This document shows, piece after piece, positions 39,982 through 48,371 of a stretch of 63,869 nucleotides of DNA; position 1 is the stretch's first letter; each line of letters opens with the position of its first letter. Below the pieces are notes generated by a model. That model worked only from the letters and a program-made list of their open reading frames with translations, did no database searches and had not been told where the DNA came from. The stretch is from contig CM106586.1 of assembly GCA_048013815.1 (NCBI GenBank), positions 2,294,132-2,358,000 on the forward strand, given 5' to 3'. The DNA is from Setoptus koraiensis (lineage: Eukaryota > Animalia > Arthropoda). The position numbers and the translations under genes are program-made.

Positions 39982-42900
39982 ATGACCCAACAAATGAATG
40001 AACTTTCTCAAGATGGAGGTTACAAAATTCAAACCTTCTACCCTAACATGGAGCAAATGAAAGACTTCTCAGCTTATATCAAATATATTGAGTCAACTGG
40101 AGCACATAGAGCAGGATTGGCTAAAATTGTCCCACCTGAAGAATGGAAACCAAGGAAAAAAACTTACGAAGATGATGATGTATACAAATTAGTGATACCT
40201 ACACCTATTGAACAAATTGTTAAAGGCGCAAAGGGTCTATACCAGCAATACCACGAGGAAAAAAAGAAAATAACAGTCAGAGATTTCAAGAAGAAGGCTG
40301 AAGAGAGTTACTCCACACCAGAGCACGCTAGTGATGAAGATTTAGAGAGAATTTATTGGAAAAATATCTCATTTAAGCCCTCTATTTATGGAGCTGATGT
40401 TCCTGGTTCATTATATGATGAAGATGTCGATGAATTCAATATAGTCAAACTAAAAACTATTCTAGACGATGTTGTGGGCGATTATAACATTTCTATACAG
40501 GGCGTCAATACAGCATATTTATATTTTGGAATGTGGAAAACAACTTTCTGCTGGCACACAGAAGACATGGACTTATACAGTATCAATTATTTGCATTTTG
40601 GCTCGCCCAAAGCATGGTATTGCATCTCTCCAGAGCATGGCAAAAGATTTGAGAGATTGGCCGCCGGTTTCTTTCCACAATTCCACAAAAGCTGCCGGGC
40701 CTTCCTTCGTCATAAGACAACACTCATCTCACCACAGATATTGAAAAAATATTCTATACCATTCTCTAAAATCGTCCAGAAACAGAGAGAATTTATGATC
40801 ACATTTCCTTATTCATATCATTCTGGATTCAATCATGGCTTCAATTGTGCGGAATCTACTAATTTCGCCATAGAGAGGTGGATAGAGTTTGGTAAATGGG
40901 CTACTAGGTGCGATTGTCACGATTCAGTTAAGATCTCTATGCAAACATTTGTTAAAAAATATCAGCCAGACCGATATGAGAGCTGGTTGATGGGTAAAGA
41001 TATATGCCAAGATCCAAGAGAACTAAAACATCTTGGTCCTTGCCCTAGGCCATCTGATTACGATTTGGATATTCTTGGTCTTGGAAGGAGAGAAGAATTG
41101 AACGGAAAACTTATCGAGATGTCCTCCGAGGATTCTAAATCGGAAGTAGACCAAAATGCTCTCAAAATTAAGACCAAAGCGGCCCTCAAAGCTTTCCCGA
41201 CCTTAGAAGAGACAATCCAAAGATTAAATAAACGCAAACAAAATAAAAATCGTGGCGTGCAACCTCACATAGAAATGCACTCTTACGCTCGATCAACGAT
41301 GATAAGACCACACAAAACTATACTGCCGAGGACGATGGTCCCTATATTAAATCCGCTATCTACAAGTGACGTTGAAGACACGAAAGGAAATTTTCTCTTT
41401 CTGCAACGGAACATAGAGACTTGGAATTTAAATAAATTTAACCCTCTACTGCCCGTCGGTGTTGCACAGAATAATCGACACCAATCTGGTGACAGTAATA
41501 ATAACGAATCATCTGGTAGGAACACAGACGAAGAAGTCATCAAGATGGCGTATTGTTTAAGCGAAGCCAGCAAGACCAAGTGTCCCAAGCCGATTCTTGA
41601 TAGACCAGATAAACGACCTAGGTTTGCTGCAGCAATCACTTCGGAAAGATTTCGATTACTACCCAATGACTGCACTTTCACACAAGAAAAGAGATTTAAC
41701 AAGTGTATGGCATCTCAGCCGCCGCACTGCTCTGTATGTCAATTCGTTAGAGAATTCCCAACCGATGATAAATTTTGGGAACCTGTGTGTTCTTCAAATA
41801 CAGAACCCACCGTCTCACCCCCAACCACTGCACCAGTGTTGATGCCTCACAGTGTATTCAGACAGATAGAGGAAAAGAAGAAAGACGACTCGGCAGGAGA
41901 AACCACAACTGAGACTCCTATTGGCTCTACTTCAAATTCTGCGTCTACAAGTTGCGACATAAATGATGATAGTCATGTTGAAGAATTGCTAAACTGCTCG
42001 GTTTGTACTCTTTGTGTGCATCGGGTGTGCTACGGATTGTCTAGAGCTAAATCAGCAAATGACAAAAAGGATTGGACTTGTGATAGATGCTTGGAGAAAA
42101 ATCGCAGCTTTATTTATTGTTATATGTGTCCCTGCCGTGGAGGGGCGCTCAAAGAAATCCCCAACAACCGTTGGGTTCATATTACGTGTGCTTTATCCAC
42201 TCCTTTTTTCACGATGACTGATCTCAGATTTCCTTGGTCCATACATATAGATGATACTGCTAGAAAAGAGGAGCAGAGGCAACAAGCAGCAGGTGGAATA
42301 ACTTGTCATTTCTGCAAATCAGAACCCAATAGTAACTCTACGTATAAGTCAATATTCGGCTACTATCTTAGATGTGATTTCGAGGAAAATCGCCTCGGCG
42401 ACTGCTCTGATTGCTCTGTATGGTTCCACGCTACCTGCGGTCATAGAAGAGGAGCCATTTTTGAGCCTCGCGACTGGTGCTCAGACCTTGATTATTCTTT
42501 CGAAGCCTATAGAATACCCTTCAAAATCACCTGCCCGAAGCATAACGATCCAGAAAGTGCGGACGAAAACGAAAATCAAGTGTTCAAAAATCATGATGAA
42601 ATTGATGAGACAACCGGGAAGCGAAAATTGCCTAGGATACCTGAAGGAACTCATGTTATCGCTGAGCACAGCGAGGATACATTGTACCACGATGCTATCA
42701 TAGTGAAATACGTTGTGAAAACTTATCACCATGTCTTCTGTGCAGCCGATAACTCAACATGCGAAGTACCCATTGAAGACATTGTGTCGTGCATTTCTGA
42801 GGGGGAAAAGGACACGCGGAAGAGGAACTGGCAAGTAGGTGATAACTTATCTATTAAATATCGCAAGGAAATTCTGTTCGGTAGATGGGTTCGCAGCACA

Positions 42901-43050
42901 CAGGAAGAAGTATATAGGGTAAAGTTTGAGCTCAAGAACGAGAAACCGTACGATCATGTGAAGAGAGAGAATATATATTTGAACGTTAGCGAAATGCCAA
43001 ACCGGTTGTTGAGGAGGTACGAGACGCGTTGCGCAATTTATTACAAATGA
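39982..43050 (+). CDS. KDM4: KDM4/JMJD2 histone lysine demethylase (JmjN-JmjC-PHD-ePHD-double Tudor), intronless, 1022 aa
   Basis: JmjN HRAGLAKIVPP; JmjC FCWHTEDMDLYSINYLHFG and YHSGFNHGFNCAESTNFA with intact HxE..H iron ligands; Cys/His PHD spacing; Tudor EDIVS..VKRENIY. Confidence 0.97.
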   Translation: MTQQMNELSQDGGYKIQTFYPNMEQMKDFSAYIKYIESTGAHRAGLAKIVPPEEWKPRKKTYEDDDVYKLVIPTPIEQIVKGAKGLYQQYHEEKKKITVRDFKKKAEESYSTPEHASDEDLERIYWKNISFKPSIYGADVPGSLYDEDVDEFNIVKLKTILDDVVGDYNISIQGVNTAYLYFGMWKTTFCWHTEDMDLYSINYLHFGSPKAWYCISPEHGKRFERLAAGFFPQFHKSCRAFLRHKTTLISPQILKKYSIPFSKIVQKQREFMITFPYSYHSGFNHGFNCAESTNFAIERWIEFGKWATRCDCHDSVKISMQTFVKKYQPDRYESWLMGKDICQDPRELKHLGPCPRPSDYDLDILGLGRREELNGKLIEMSSEDSKSEVDQNALKIKTKAALKAFPTLEETIQRLNKRKQNKNRGVQPHIEMHSYARSTMIRPHKTILPRTMVPILNPLSTSDVEDTKGNFLFLQRNIETWNLNKFNPLLPVGVAQNNRHQSGDSNNNESSGRNTDEEVIKMAYCLSEASKTKCPKPILDRPDKRPRFAAAITSERFRLLPNDCTFTQEKRFNKCMASQPPHCSVCQFVREFPTDDKFWEPVCSSNTEPTVSPPTTAPVLMPHSVFRQIEEKKKDDSAGETTTETPIGSTSNSASTSCDINDDSHVEELLNCSVCTLCVHRVCYGLSRAKSANDKKDWTCDRCLEKNRSFIYCYMCPCRGGALKEIPNNRWVHITCALSTPFFTMTDLRFPWSIHIDDTARKEEQRQQAAGGITCHFCKSEPNSNSTYKSIFGYYLRCDFEENRLGDCSDCSVWFHATCGHRRGAIFEPRDWCSDLDYSFEAYRIPFKITCPKHNDPESADENENQVFKNHDEIDETTGKRKLPRIPEGTHVIAEHSEDTLYHDAIIVKYVVKTYHHVFCAADNSTCEVPIEDIVSCISEGEKDTRKRNWQVGDNLSIKYRKEILFGRWVRSTQEEVYRVKFELKNEKPYDHVKRENIYLNVSEMPNRLLRRYETRCAIYYK

Positions 43051-43080
43051 TAATATACACAAGACCGTCACTTCGGTCAA

Positions 43081-43089
43081 TTTATTAAA
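43081..43089. terminator. Overlapping poly(A) signals: ATTAAA (+, 43084-43089) and AATAAA (-, 43081-43086)
   Basis: TTTATTAAA lies in the 120-bp gap between the convergent KDM4 and RPN2 stops. A second minus-strand AATAAA is at 43144-43149. Confidence 0.5.
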
Positions 43090-43170
43090 GTAGCAATGAT
43101 TTTTGATGTAGATATACAATTCTTTTTACTGGTGCAAGAGAGCTTTATTCTTTGATGTATTTAATATAAC

Positions 43171-43518
43171 TCAAAATGAATAATATAGCAAGCATGTTAG
43201 TGGAGTAGCGTATTTCAGAGTTGTGAACATGTTAGTACCGAACCAAAAGTTGGCATAAATTGATAATATGCCTGCTAGTGCTAATTGAAAAATTAATCTA
43301 ACTTCTTTCAGGGCAATTTTTTTTGGCCAGAAGGTCCATAAGAAAAATACCGGTGAGGCGACCAACAGAGTGAATATCGAAGTGATGACAAAAGACGGTC
43401 TACTCTCCGGCTTCTTGAATTCATGTTTGATCTCGGGCTTCAAGCATACTGCACAGGTGACACTAATCAGAATGATGACGAAGATGTATATGAACCTAAA
43501 ATGGGCTGGGCTTCCCAT
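43171..43518 (-). CDS. RPN2: Miniature ribophorin II / Swp1 (OST subunit): signal peptide plus C-terminal 3-TM module only, 115 aa
   Basis: KPEIKHEFKKPESRPSFVITSIFT and NMFTTLKY match the recalled RPN2 C-terminus [24 protein letters not shown] and NMFQTLKY. The N-terminal hydrophobic stretch looks like a signal peptide. Confidence 0.85.
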   Translation of the reverse strand: MGSPAHFRFIYIFVIILISVTCAVCLKPEIKHEFKKPESRPSFVITSIFTLLVASPVFFLWTFWPKKIALKEVRLIFQLALAGILSIYANFWFGTNMFTTLKYATPLTCLLYYSF

Positions 43519-43834
43519 GATGGTGAATAAAGTTATATGTCCTTTGTAGAGAAACGATTTAAGTTTAAAATTTGTTTTGAGGGACTGTTGAATTTGTAAA
43601 TGAAAATACTACAGTTCGGCATGTTTAGGTGGCTCATCTAGTGATAATCACTGTAAAGGGATACTCAAATTGTAGTCCAATGAATGGCGCGTGATTTAAA
43701 CAAAAATAAAAATAAACGGACGATTGAGCGATATGCACAAGTCCCCTTCTAAAAGTCAGCTGTGAAGTTCCTGTTCTTGTTCACGTTCCCCCCAGGACGA
43801 GTGCCATGTGTGCTCCGTTGGGAGAACAGACAGG

Positions 43835-43986
43835 GTAAGTAATCTGGAAAGGTGGGAGACGGTGGGAGTGGGTGGTCTCTGAACAGCACAAATTCATTAG
43901 AATTGCTCGCTCGGCCCAGTATCTAAAATATCTCTTTAGAGCATACCCCAATATTTGTCAGAGAGAAGATATAAGATTGTGTTTAG
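43835..43986 (+). other. Probable 5'-UTR intron of cyclin H
   Basis: CAGG|GTAAGT donor and tttag| acceptor 9 nt before the ATG. Confidence 0.5.
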
Positions 43987-43995
43987 GTCATCAAA

Positions 43996-44859
43996 ATGTA
44001 TAGTACTAGTACACAAAGGAAATTCTGGCTCTATAGCAGCAGCAAAAAACTTGAAAAGCTTAGACAGCAAGCAAATGAAGAGTATATCATGAGAAGACAA
44101 ACTCAGGGCCCGATGGTTAATGAGAGTAATTTTTTGACAACAAGAGAGGAATCCTACTACATCAAACACAACTTGAATATTCTTTATGATGTATGTAAAA
44201 AATTCCAACCCACAATGCTCAAATCAGTGATAGGAACAGCGTTTCAATATTTCAAAAGATTCTATCTAACTAATTCTTGTATGGAGTACCTTCCGAAAAA
44301 CATTGCAGTGACATGTTTTTATTTAGCTTGTAAAGTTGAAGAATTCAATGTTAATATCAACCAGTTTGTATCTAATTTGAAAGGCGACGGCGAAAGAGCT
44401 GCAGATATTGTACTCTCGAATGAGCTTCTATTAATGCAAAAATTGAAGTATCACTTGACCGTACACAATCCATATAGATCGGTTGAGGGACTATTAATAG
44501 ATTTGAAGACAAGAGGATCATTTGAATCGGATGATATTGAAGAACTCCGACCCTACATAGACGATTATATTGATAGAGTAATGTTCACAGACGCTTGTTT
44601 CCTATTTACTCCATCCCAAATAGCCCTATCTTCAATACTATTTGGAGCCTCAAAGTACAACTTGAACATTGAACCTTACTTAGCTGATGTTTTGTTCCAT
44701 GATGCACCAGAAAAATTGATCCATATAAAGAATATTAGTGAGGCTATTAACGGACTACTCCAATCACAAGAAAATCCCACAAAGGATATCATAAAGTCTA
44801 TAGATAAGAAATTGAAACATGTTCATCTCGAAATAAAGAATGTTGATCCTCCTGAGTAA
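43996..44859 (+). CDS. CCNH: Cyclin H (CAK/TFIIH subunit), CDS intronless, 287 aa
   Basis: MYSTSTQRKFW start, YFKRFYLTNSCMEYLPK, LACKVEEFNV, LKYHLTVHNPYR, LFTPSQIAL. Confidence 0.96.
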   Translation: MYSTSTQRKFWLYSSSKKLEKLRQQANEEYIMRRQTQGPMVNESNFLTTREESYYIKHNLNILYDVCKKFQPTMLKSVIGTAFQYFKRFYLTNSCMEYLPKNIAVTCFYLACKVEEFNVNINQFVSNLKGDGERAADIVLSNELLLMQKLKYHLTVHNPYRSVEGLLIDLKTRGSFESDDIEELRPYIDDYIDRVMFTDACFLFTPSQIALSSILFGASKYNLNIEPYLADVLFHDAPEKLIHIKNISEAINGLLQSQENPTKDIIKSIDKKLKHVHLEIKNVDPPE

Positions 44860-46397
44860 GAACGTGTGGCAATTAGTCAACTCAGCGGTTGTTTGAAAGG
44901 AATGGATGTAAGAAAAGTCGCTCTATCGCTTTTAACAATTTATCAAGTATGAATTCAACTTTTTTTGTCTACTCAGAGGGCGCATTGATGGAACAGGTGG
45001 CCCAAGTGCCTATAGCTGAATAAACAGCACTAAGTCGCAAAACTAATTGTAGCGTCTCATAAATTATTCGAACCTAAATTGTTCTAACCAACAATGATTC
45101 AGTAATCCTAGCTCCAGCGTCTCTGATGAAACAAAGTGTCCACTCTATGTCATTAATTTATATCCTAATTGTGGTTGGTATCCGTGTACCAAAGCTCTGT
45201 TTGAAAACGAATGTCCAATTGAAATGCCCTAGAAATTAGCTGATGTCTTCATTTATGTTACTACTATCATTGGTAACCATTCGTTGAGTTTACTTAAAGA
45301 CGATACGATGTGTGTATTACGGTAATGTTATATTAAACAGACAAATATAGATCAGTGGTGAATTGATAGGATAAAAATGACCATCAAAGCTTAGTTATTA
45401 AGGCAATTGATGATTGCATTGTAATGCAAGTTAATTCGTATAAGGAACCACAAGTGCGACTTTATTTTTAATTGTATTTGGTATATCCATGTGGCACGCG
45501 CCACTAACGACAACCATCGTGTTGATGAGTGTCACATGTGGTCAGCATATGAGTTTTTTCTGCTCTTTCCTCTTCACTTCACTTGTTTTCTTTTTGTTGT
45601 CTTCCTCATCCTCATCATTCTGGCGACTTGAATAAAATTAGTTTGAGCAATACTGTAGTAATGCGAATAGCGAAGCACATGCTGTTGCTCGCCTCGTTGT
45701 TCTGTTTGTTTGCTTGCTGTTAATTGTGTTGTGCTTGCTCGTTGTCTACATATTTTTTCTTTTTCCTCTTCTTGTACTTATACTGTACTATGATAGTTGG
45801 ATCTGGTCCAAACACAATAATAATAAAGCATACTGAGATTAGCTACAGCGAATCCATGTTGTATGCTTGCATCCAGATGCTGCTTCTTCTTCATCCTGAG
45901 TATAACTTAACAACAATTTCTCTTCTCAAAATGCTAAGTGCGCTGTGTTCTAAATGTAAAATACAATTTGAGTTTGCTTCTTATGTGCCTTGACACCAGG
46001 CTTTAAACTAAGTAAAAATTTGCGCAAAAAGTATAAGACATTATACTGTCGTGATGCACATGCACTACTTTCTGTGCAAAATAGAACAGAAAGAATGAAT
46101 CGCTTACTATTGAATAGCCAATAGTAAGTGCCGCACAACTCTCAGAACAAACAGTTTACTACGGGGAGTGATGATGATGAAGAGCGGCGCGCAACAGTGT
46201 TCAACTAAAAGTAGTATGGCACACAGTATTATCGCACGAGCAAATGCGACACTTTCACTCGCTTCCGATTATTGATACACAGAGCAGTTGGTTATATTTG
46301 CTTCAACTCATTGTTATTATGACTACAATTACGGTACTACTACAATTGTCTTGACTTATAATTTTGTGATAATATTACACAACACTAGAATAGCAAA

Positions 46398-48371
46398 ATG
46401 GATCAACAACAATCAAACTTTATAATTGTATCATTACTGCTCGTGACGATGATTATTATTGTCACTATTCCAACTACTGTTATAACAGTTAAATCAAACA
46501 AATCACGACCACTAACGCGACCCGCTAAAACTTCAACAACCACACCGACACCGCTAACCTCTCTAGTAATTATTCAGAAAATTCATTACGAACACGAAGA
46601 AGTGGAATTGGATTGTGATGCAAGTCAGCAACTTAACATAACCCAATTAAAATCCGTAAATCACACTATTCGATGGAAACATGATGAAACTATTGTGCAT
46701 CGCGTTAACGGTGAATATATCTATTATAAGAACAATAATCTCACATTAAAACTTCCAAATGTTGGACAATCAGACAGTGGTATATATAAATGTGAAATAA
46801 CTACAAGCAAAACTCAAGTTTTAAGCGTCTATGATCTTCAAATCAAAACGCACATATTTCATGATAAACCCCATATAACACACCCACCTACTAATCACTC
46901 TGTGGAACTTGGCGCAAACATCACACTCACTTGTAACCATACTGAAACTAATCTCGTAACACATCTATATTGGTTTAAGATACCCCCTGTTACTGATAAA
47001 AACAAGACAGACTTATTTTGGTCAATTTACAATAATATCTATTATAATAAACGAGGATTATCATCGAATTTTTCTATCGGTGGACAAGACGAGACTCTTC
47101 AGCTCAATAATATCACTCAAGACATGCTTGGCGGTTATGGATGTCATGTTCAAAACGCAATGGGATCCGATGCTAGAATAGGCTACATTACCTTGACCAC
47201 AAGAATTGAACCACTAATCAATGTTCAGCCCGATACAGACTACAAACTACAAACTGCCATAGGTGTGCTATCAGTTGCTTGCATTAGTTCAATACTGTAT
47301 ATATTGTACAAATTCAAAATAACAACTTTGAATCCTACAATCAACAAAGATATTCAAACTAGCGATCTTAAAGACGCAGTCTCCAATTGGACGCCATCAG
47401 TTGACACCAGACTTATATCTATTCAATCATCCATGTATGACTTCTTACCATACACTGACTCTACAGAATGCAATTTCCAGCCGTCGCTCATTTGCAATCC
47501 ATTTTACGGCCAGGTACCAATGACAACTGAATTTGCTGGAAATAAAATCGAATTCCTCAATGTATTAGGTAAGGGTGACTTTGGAGAAGTATGGAAATGC
47601 GTACACCACGCTAGCGATTACACAAGAATAGTTGCTGTCAAACGAATTATTCATCGAGAAGGTTTCGCAACAAAAGAACGTTTAGGTTTGCTGGCTGAAA
47701 TCGAGATTATGAAATTACTAGGCAAGCACCCAAATGTCGTCCAGTTCCATGGTTGTTGTACGCAAGAAGATATGCCAATCTACTTGATTATGGAATTTGT
47801 CGAGAAAGGCGGGCTGATAGACTATCTTCGAAAGAGTAGAACTTACATCAATTTGAGCGATAATTATCTGACCTCTAGAGATTTGATACGTTTCTCATAC
47901 GATATAGCCAAAGGAATGGACTACGTTTCTTCACAAGGAATTGTACACAGGGATCTCGCTGCGAGAAATATTTTACTGTCCGCCAATAACACATGCAAAG
48001 TCGCTGATTTCGGTTTTGCAAGAAAAATTAATGATGAGTGCCCTTATGAGAAAAAATCTGATGACAAAGTTCCCGTCAGATGGATGGCCCCGGAATCGTT
48101 CCCAAACAAAAACATCTACACCACTAAATCAGATGTTTTCTCATTTGGTATACTGGTCTGGGAGATTGTGACCCTAGGCTCGACACCTTATGAAAAGCTA
48201 ACAGCAGGAGAAGTCAGAGAAAAGGTTTGCCTTGGAGAAAGATTGTTACGTCCACAGCACTGCAAAGAAGAGTTGTTTGCAATCATGTTAGACTGCTGGT
48301 CTTCCGAACCAAACAGAAGACCAAGATTTGACGAATTAGCACAGAAATTAGATTCCCTGTCTGCTAGTGCA
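46398..48371 (+). CDS. Receptor tyrosine kinase: signal peptide, two Ig domains, TM, Cad96Ca/Ret-family-like kinase; 3' end lost in the gap
   Basis: Ig motifs (C..W..DSGIYKC and TC..YWFK..GYGC), TM AIGVLSVACISSILYILY, kinase GKGDFG, VAVK, HRDLAARN, DFG, RWMAPE. 658 codons before the Ns. Confidence 0.9.

Follow-up and report, generated by a model that had tools for sequence, protein, structure and literature searches.

Full-length ribophorin II (RPN2) is the rule in animals, with a lumenal part of about 500 residues, and many RPN2 proteins of 600-700 aa were retrieved in our exhaustive protein search. In the oligosaccharyltransferase (OST), RPN2/Swp1 forms subcomplex III with DAD1/Ost2 and OST48/Wbp1 (PMC7226087, PMC9701220). 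DAD1 is a direct partner of RPN2, and the three helices of Swp1/RPN2 and the helices of Ost2/DAD1 surround the single helix of Wbp1/OST48 (PMC7226087). The lumenal role of RPN2/Swp1 has been described in reviews as 'possibly LLO recruitment', LLO being the lipid-linked oligosaccharide that acts as sugar donor (PMC7226087). An older hypothesis tied the subunit to the selection of glucosylated donors (PMC2064103). The yeast structures of 2022 revealed that the pocket for Glc3 of the donor glycan is formed by WBP1 and OST2, not by Swp1 (PMC9701220).

The length of the lumenal region differs among described members of the family. Yeast Swp1 is naturally short, about 285 aa with one lumenal domain (PMC7226087), and its chains in solved structures (283-286 aa; 6EZN, 6C26, 8AGB) have the same C-terminal membrane domain as the protein described here. 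The RPN2 of Caenorhabditis auriculariae (P0012, 342 aa) keeps Ribophorin_II_3rd as its only lumenal domain. The lumenal region of RPN2 is evolutionarily labile, and an anchor-only form is one step beyond the shrinkage seen in Swp1 and in the nematode, each of which retains one lumenal domain where the mite protein has none.

The window, that is the whole 63.9-kb stretch of Setoptus koraiensis DNA that was analysed, contains an ATG-initiated ORF of 115 codons followed by a TGA stop (43171-43173), at 43171..43518 on the minus strand. It is annotated as the complete, single-exon coding sequence of a minimal RPN2/Swp1 homologue, here called mini-RPN2, from the ORF list and from matches to Pfam, to PDB sequences and to a full-length RPN2 profile. 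The original prediction had placed a 115-aa minus-strand ORF at this position and had read it as a leader running into a juxtamembrane motif and three transmembrane (TM) helices. Both the ORF with its ATG and this layout, the leader, KPEIKHEFKKPESRP and three hydrophobic helices, were found in the sequence. A Pfam search, which had been proposed as a check, recovered Ribophorin_II_C (PF25147) with an E-value of 1.6e-10 and 42 bits against a curated cut-off of 27. The C domain was the only one recovered, the Ribophorin_II N, 2nd and 3rd domains being absent. Among PDB sequences, phmmer aligned residues 27-108 with residues 523-610 of human RPN2 (6s7o_F, E 6.6e-10), and the match to yeast Swp1 was much weaker. 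A full-length RPN2 profile of our own, made from 45 proteins, with 638 positions, and run unfiltered at maximum sensitivity in six frames, matched the window at profile positions 529-619 with an E-value of 3.9e-23. On these matches, the homology to RPN2 is far beyond chance. By its membrane domain and its juxtamembrane motif, the predicted protein belongs to the RPN2/Swp1 family, and it has neither the lumenal domains nor the tail of the family.

Residues 1-25 (43444..43518) form a leader predicted to be a cleavable signal peptide, as judged from its hydrophobic core, where the Kyte-Doolittle mean over 10 residues reaches a maximum of 3.48, and from the (-3,-1) pattern of its relatives. The predicted cleavage point lies after A-V-C and before L-K-P-E-I, and the leader is presumably removed by signal peptidase. 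It is followed at once by the lumenal juxtamembrane segment with its KPEI-H-F-PE-RP motif (residues 26-42, 43393..43443), which corresponds to residues 523-539 of human RPN2 and was delimited in a 58-sequence alignment. The motif, K-P/Q-E-I-x-H-x-F-x-x-P-E-x-R-P, occupies residues 27-41 just before TM1 and pairs with human residues 523-537. E29, I30, H32, F34 and P41 are invariant across the 58 sequences, long forms included, and in this alignment the segment is the most conserved motif of the RPN2 family. TM helix 1 (residues 43-63, 43330..43392) is predicted by AlphaFold2 and aligns to the human RPN2 TM region. A short lysine-rich loop, delimited in the alignments (residues 64-71, 43306..43329), connects it to TM helix 2 (residues 72-92, 43243..43305, from AlphaFold2), and a positive-inside reading places this loop on the cytosolic side. 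It is 6 residues shorter than in human RPN2 and 5 residues shorter than in most mite relatives, as the original prediction of a shortened TM1-TM2 loop implied. The last segment (residues 93-115, 43174..43242) comprises a putative lumenal turn, F-G-T-N, and TM helix 3, for which AlphaFold2 gives a helix at 97-114. The protein stops at the last TM residue, at the membrane edge. The Pfam match spans profile positions 1-84 of 99, and the 15 unmatched positions, 85-99, indicate that the cytosolic tail is missing, in line with the tail-less end that had been predicted.

The AlphaFold2 monomer, modelled from the 58-sequence alignment, has helices at 4-24 (the leader), 43-63, 72-92 and 97-114, with a mean pLDDT of 88. 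The best seven Foldseek matches in the PDB were all RPN2/Swp1 chains from human and yeast OST structures, with probabilities of 0.94-1.00 at a poor geometry (TM-score about 0.39, rmsd >8 Å). The low TM-score comes from the packing of the leader against the three helices in the monomer model, and the modelled similarity to solved RPN2/Swp1 chains is weak. Human RPN2 (631 aa; chain F of 6S7O and 6S7T) is the best structural match. Its motif and three TM helices align with those of mini-RPN2, and the predicted topology is the same. Compared with it, mini-RPN2 lacks about 500 lumenal residues (Pfam Ribophorin_II N, 2nd and 3rd) and the tail, and its signal peptide directly abuts the anchor. Once cleaved, the protein would have about 90 residues in the normal RPN2 topology, with a lumenal N-terminus and the C-terminus at the cytosolic face. 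The mature order would be 17 lumenal motif residues, TM1, an 8-residue lysine-rich cytosolic loop, TM2, a four-residue lumenal turn and TM3. If the leader were left uncleaved, the orientation of the remaining protein would be unchanged.

Word-indexed and exhaustive protein searches yielded 41 distinct homologues of 112-136 aa, counted from the start Met. All start with Met, in many cases with a basic n-region behind it, and a hydrophobic core leads directly into [LIMV]-K-P-E-I. The residue at position -1 before this motif is G, A, S or C in 40 of the 41, and the residue at -3 is V, A, T, C or S in equally many, which by sequence is the classical signal-peptidase pattern. The abrupt end without a tail is the same in 40 relatives. 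One member is from the wheat curl mite Aceria tosichella, an eriophyoid (P0293, UniRef, 124 aa), and another, of 123 aa, is a JGI protein called ribophorin II. The Aceria-type proteins resemble the window protein in having the signal peptide directly on the anchor, no tail, and the turn F-W-[FL]-G-T-N-M-F between TM2 and TM3. This turn reads F-W-x-Q-L-N-M-F in long forms. The window protein and its two nearest relatives, P0001 and L009, make up a divergent pair or trio with a loop shorter by 5 residues; identity between this group and the Aceria-type proteins is 42-49%. A maximum-likelihood tree built on the membrane domain unites all 41 short proteins in a single clade (SH-aLRT 92), within which the window protein and P0001 are paired (97) on a longer branch. 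An anchor-only RPN2 is an old trait of the whole clade, Aceria tosichella included, and not a peculiarity of one genome. Three further proteins from Logan contigs, P0007 (100 aa), P0010 (98 aa) and P0313 (105 aa), break after K-F-W of the TM2-TM3 turn and continue with a few unrelated residues. The break suggests an intron at this place in some species; the window gene is uninterrupted.

The gene lies head to head with a cyclin H gene (43996..44859, plus strand; Pfam Cyclin_N and Cyclin_C_2). The distance between mini-RPN2 and the ATG of this divergent gene, at 43996, had been put at 477 bp, which is exact. This spacer (43519..43995), a presumed bidirectional promoter, is interrupted on the mini-RPN2 strand by 6-8 stops per frame and has an A at -3 of the ATG. 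The pairing with cyclin H is kept in five related contigs (L001, L002, L004, L005 and L009). The ATG-ATG spacing is 238-404 bp in these contigs, against 477 bp in the window. The related spacers also contain stops in all frames, and an A stands at -3 of every ATG. A receptor tyrosine kinase gene follows beyond cyclin H in the window and in L004 and L005, the two contigs that reach far enough. Cyclin H has 287 aa in the window (43996-44859), 275-290 aa in related small-genome contigs (e.g., L009:848-1720) and 320-335 aa in other arthropods; from these lengths it looks like another protein shortening in the same lineage. The cyclin H of the window shares about 50% of its residues with the proteins of Tetranychus, Oppia and Halotydeus.

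On the other side, an intronless KDM4-like JmjC/PHD gene of 1022 aa (39982-43050, plus strand) converges on mini-RPN2, with 120 bp between the two stops (43051-43170). Sequence reading of the minus strand identified two AATAAA hexamers as candidate polyadenylation signals inside this gap, at 43144-43149 and 43081-43086, which are 21 and 84 nt past the mini-RPN2 stop. In the Aceria-type relatives, the place of the KDM4-like gene downstream is taken by a gene for a mitochondrial carrier, on the strand opposite to mini-RPN2. Long intronless ORFs and tiny spacers characterize the layout of the window, as published for eriophyoid genomes (PMC7738191; compare a 2026 Floracarus preprint); about 84% of the genes in these lack introns (PMC7738191). 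Judged by its RPN2 clade and by this compact, intron-poor layout, the source would be an acariform mite of the eriophyoid type.

The conservation of the locus was compared on the two sides of the ATG. Against L006, among the closest relatives, DNA identity is 72% in the ORF and 46.5% over the 346 nt upstream, where shuffled sequence gives 47%. On this comparison, conservation begins at the mini-RPN2 ATG. For the mature part, dN/dS was 0.115/0.94 against L009 and 0.124/1.19 against L006, and the neighbouring cyclin H gave 0.068/1.13. These estimates are restricted to the three closest sequences, since dS is saturated for most Aceria-type pairs. With dN/dS of about 0.1, the mature part of mini-RPN2 is, by codon comparison, under purifying selection. 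In the leader, dN reaches 0.47-0.58, a rapid change during which the hydrophobicity is kept. A leader that changes fast yet remains hydrophobic behaves, in this alignment, as signal peptides do.

Searches for the missing part covered the window and related loci. No homology to the lumenal region (profile positions 1-520) was detected in six frames in the 63.9-kb window and the related contigs, nor in the 5-13 kb that surround the gene in seven related contigs. That there is no room for lumenal exons had been argued from the short gap to cyclin H, and the full-length RPN2 profile bears this out, as it finds no lumenal match in the window. A very divergent lumenal remnant could escape the profile, because lumenal domains are poorly conserved.

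No indexed RNA run contains the mini-RPN2 ORF. Four poly(A)/oligo-dT RNA runs (X16, X19, X20 and X21), chosen by a species label that they have in common with some DNA runs containing the locus, gave zero reads on window positions 42500-47500, cyclin H and the kinase gene included. They are no test of expression, because reads are missing even on the housekeeping neighbours, and their species label probably denotes a host or a mixed sample rather than the mite.

Indirect support for a link between mini-RPN2 and OST comes from one of the related contigs. In L007:217-987 (P0300, a Logan contig of SRR30952567), a single 256-codon ORF has mini-RPN2 in frame with DAD1. It comprises a signal peptide, Ribophorin_II_C at residues 48-131, a linker of about 35 residues and Pfam DAD at residues 185-255 (E 7e-13). 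The topology is consistent across the join, since the C-terminus of RPN2 and the N-terminus of DAD1 are both cytosolic. In P0300, seen in one 1028-nt contig of one run, two partners from OST subcomplex III may thus have fused in nature. Among the related loci only L007 has this fusion, and no DAD1 gene was found in the window or in the others. The fusion supports a continued link to OST, and mini-RPN2 most likely still belongs to the complex.

Short RPN2 forms have also been found outside this clade. In the redlegged earth mite Halotydeus destructor, a single-exon gene (L008:10001-10453; GCA_022750525.1, JAIUWE010000053.1) encodes an RPN2 of 150 aa (KAI1299206.1, P0018), in which a signal peptide and a stub of about 25 lumenal residues precede the three TM helices and the canonical basic tail follows them. 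It differs from the window protein in keeping the stub and the tail, and it falls outside the short clade in the tree. The gene has an in-frame stop one codon 5' of its ATG and different neighbours, cyclin H not being among them, and no lumenal homology was present within 10 kb on either side. The protist Colponema vietnamica has a protein of 146 aa (P0148, EukProt), whose ORF is complete on its transcript according to the source name, with a signal peptide, the KPEI motif almost at once and three TM helices. It retains the cytosolic tail and also lies outside the mite clade, which indicates that anchor-only forms arose outside animals too. Both proteins were placed among the long forms, in a part of the tree with weak resolution. 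One full-length RPN2 of 645 aa (P0029, RWS24210.1) is, judging by its accession series only, presumably a trombidiform mite record; in that case the truncation would not extend to all mites. Mini-RPN2 is a variant of a known family, and short mite entries stand in UniRef, NCBI and JGI under automatic RPN2 names. A literature search on ribophorin II in mites found no paper on these short forms, and ribophorin is unmentioned in the Aculops lycopersici genome paper and in 200 of its 225 supplementary files.

The favoured explanation, to which we give a probability of about 0.72, is that the ORF is a complete and functional intronless gene for a minimal RPN2/Swp1, whose lumenal domains and tail have been lost clade-wide in genome-streamlined mites. 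A complete minimal RPN2 had been proposed originally, and it is backed by the 41 homologues of like build, the kept cyclin H neighbour, the conservation boundary at the ATG, the purifying selection and the lack of lumenal homology in the window. In its product, a cleavable signal peptide would directly adjoin the juxtamembrane motif, with the three-helix membrane domain behind it. Neither the cytosolic tail nor the three lumenal domains, which in other animals make up about 500 residues, would have survived in the lineage. Its helices would pack around the OST48 helix beside DAD1 in OST subcomplex III. The mites would have retained exactly the part of RPN2 that holds the membrane subcomplex together and dropped the remainder. 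We infer that the lumenal part was truly lost and not relocated. A form of 112-136 aa that recurs in dozens of mites makes the lumenal part look dispensable in them.

This explanation has to be weighed against readings in which the lumenal part persists, or in which the short protein no longer does the work of RPN2. If the ORF were the terminal exon of a longer gene, lumenal exons would have to lie far upstream, beyond cyclin H, and be spliced to an acceptor just before the ATG. Such a splice is conceivable from the 30 in-frame codons that remain open 5' of the window ATG and from an AG near 43542, but nothing points to the use of this AG as an acceptor, and the open stretch, anywhere between 3 and 63 codons long in the relatives, shows no conservation. 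All relatives begin with a Met and a signal-peptide-like leader, which added exons would bury in the middle of the protein. With no lumenal homology on either strand of the window, an in-frame stop directly before the Halotydeus ATG and a Colponema form that is complete on its transcript, this is the least probable reading, and the ORF is, on the sequence evidence, very probably a complete single-exon gene. In a split gene, this ORF would supply the anchor alone, and a locus elsewhere would encode the lumenal domains as a secreted or ER-resident protein that rejoins OST non-covalently. Nothing direct speaks for it, although the search covered one 63.9-kb window of the genome. Against it stand the lack of lumenal homology in the window, in the 5-13 kb of the seven related contigs and in the 10 kb on both sides of the Halotydeus gene, as well as the precedents of lumenal shrinkage in Swp1 (about 285 aa) and in the nematode (342 aa). 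As the lumenal region is known to shrink, outright loss is simpler, and we regard a split gene as unlikely.

It may also be asked whether the short ORF is a redundant or decaying copy, a retrocopy fragment or pseudogene, while an RPN2 of about 630 aa works elsewhere in the genome. Full-length RPN2 is usual in animals, and the many proteins of 600-700 aa in our searches fit this idea. A decaying copy is hard to reconcile with a dN/dS of about 0.1 at saturated dS, or with a form kept in 41 distinct sequences with its position and neighbour conserved. The long proteins closest to mini-RPN2 in a library of 1.8 billion representatives share only about 40% identity with it and come from unrelated animals and protists. 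Those that could be named are from a choanoflagellate, a sponge, a mealybug and a horsehair worm, none of them a lineage-specific paralogue. A redundant copy is very unlikely on this evidence. Finally, an RPN2 descendant could have been repurposed as a small membrane protein that is no longer in oligosaccharyltransferase. The loss of both the lumenal part and the cytosolic tail, the altered TM2-TM3 turn and the long branch of the short clade would suit such a change. The most conserved motif of the family and the three helices are nevertheless kept under purifying selection, and one relative fuses mini-RPN2 to the OST partner DAD1, so that repurposing is quite unlikely.

A minimal RPN2 that has lost its lumenal domains would have consequences for the understanding of N-glycosylation in these mites. 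We consider it fairly probable that a clade of eriophyoid-type mites N-glycosylates with an RPN2 devoid of any lumenal domain, with no separate lumenal piece replacing it. If this is true, the essential role of RPN2/Swp1 would be that of a membrane module of about 90 residues that scaffolds DAD1 and OST48, and in at least one species this module would even be fused with DAD1 as one polypeptide. A clade that keeps the membrane module alone under purifying selection would be a natural deletion experiment, and it predicts that the anchor is essential. Mini-RPN2 would also offer a 90-residue construct for complementation and structural work. More speculatively, the anchor-only RPN2 that this clade has in common with Halotydeus (Eupodina) might serve as a rare genomic change for placing the eriophyoids among mites. 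For the organisms themselves, mini-RPN2 would exemplify a streamlining at the protein level in the smallest arthropod genomes, beyond the loss of introns and intergenic DNA.
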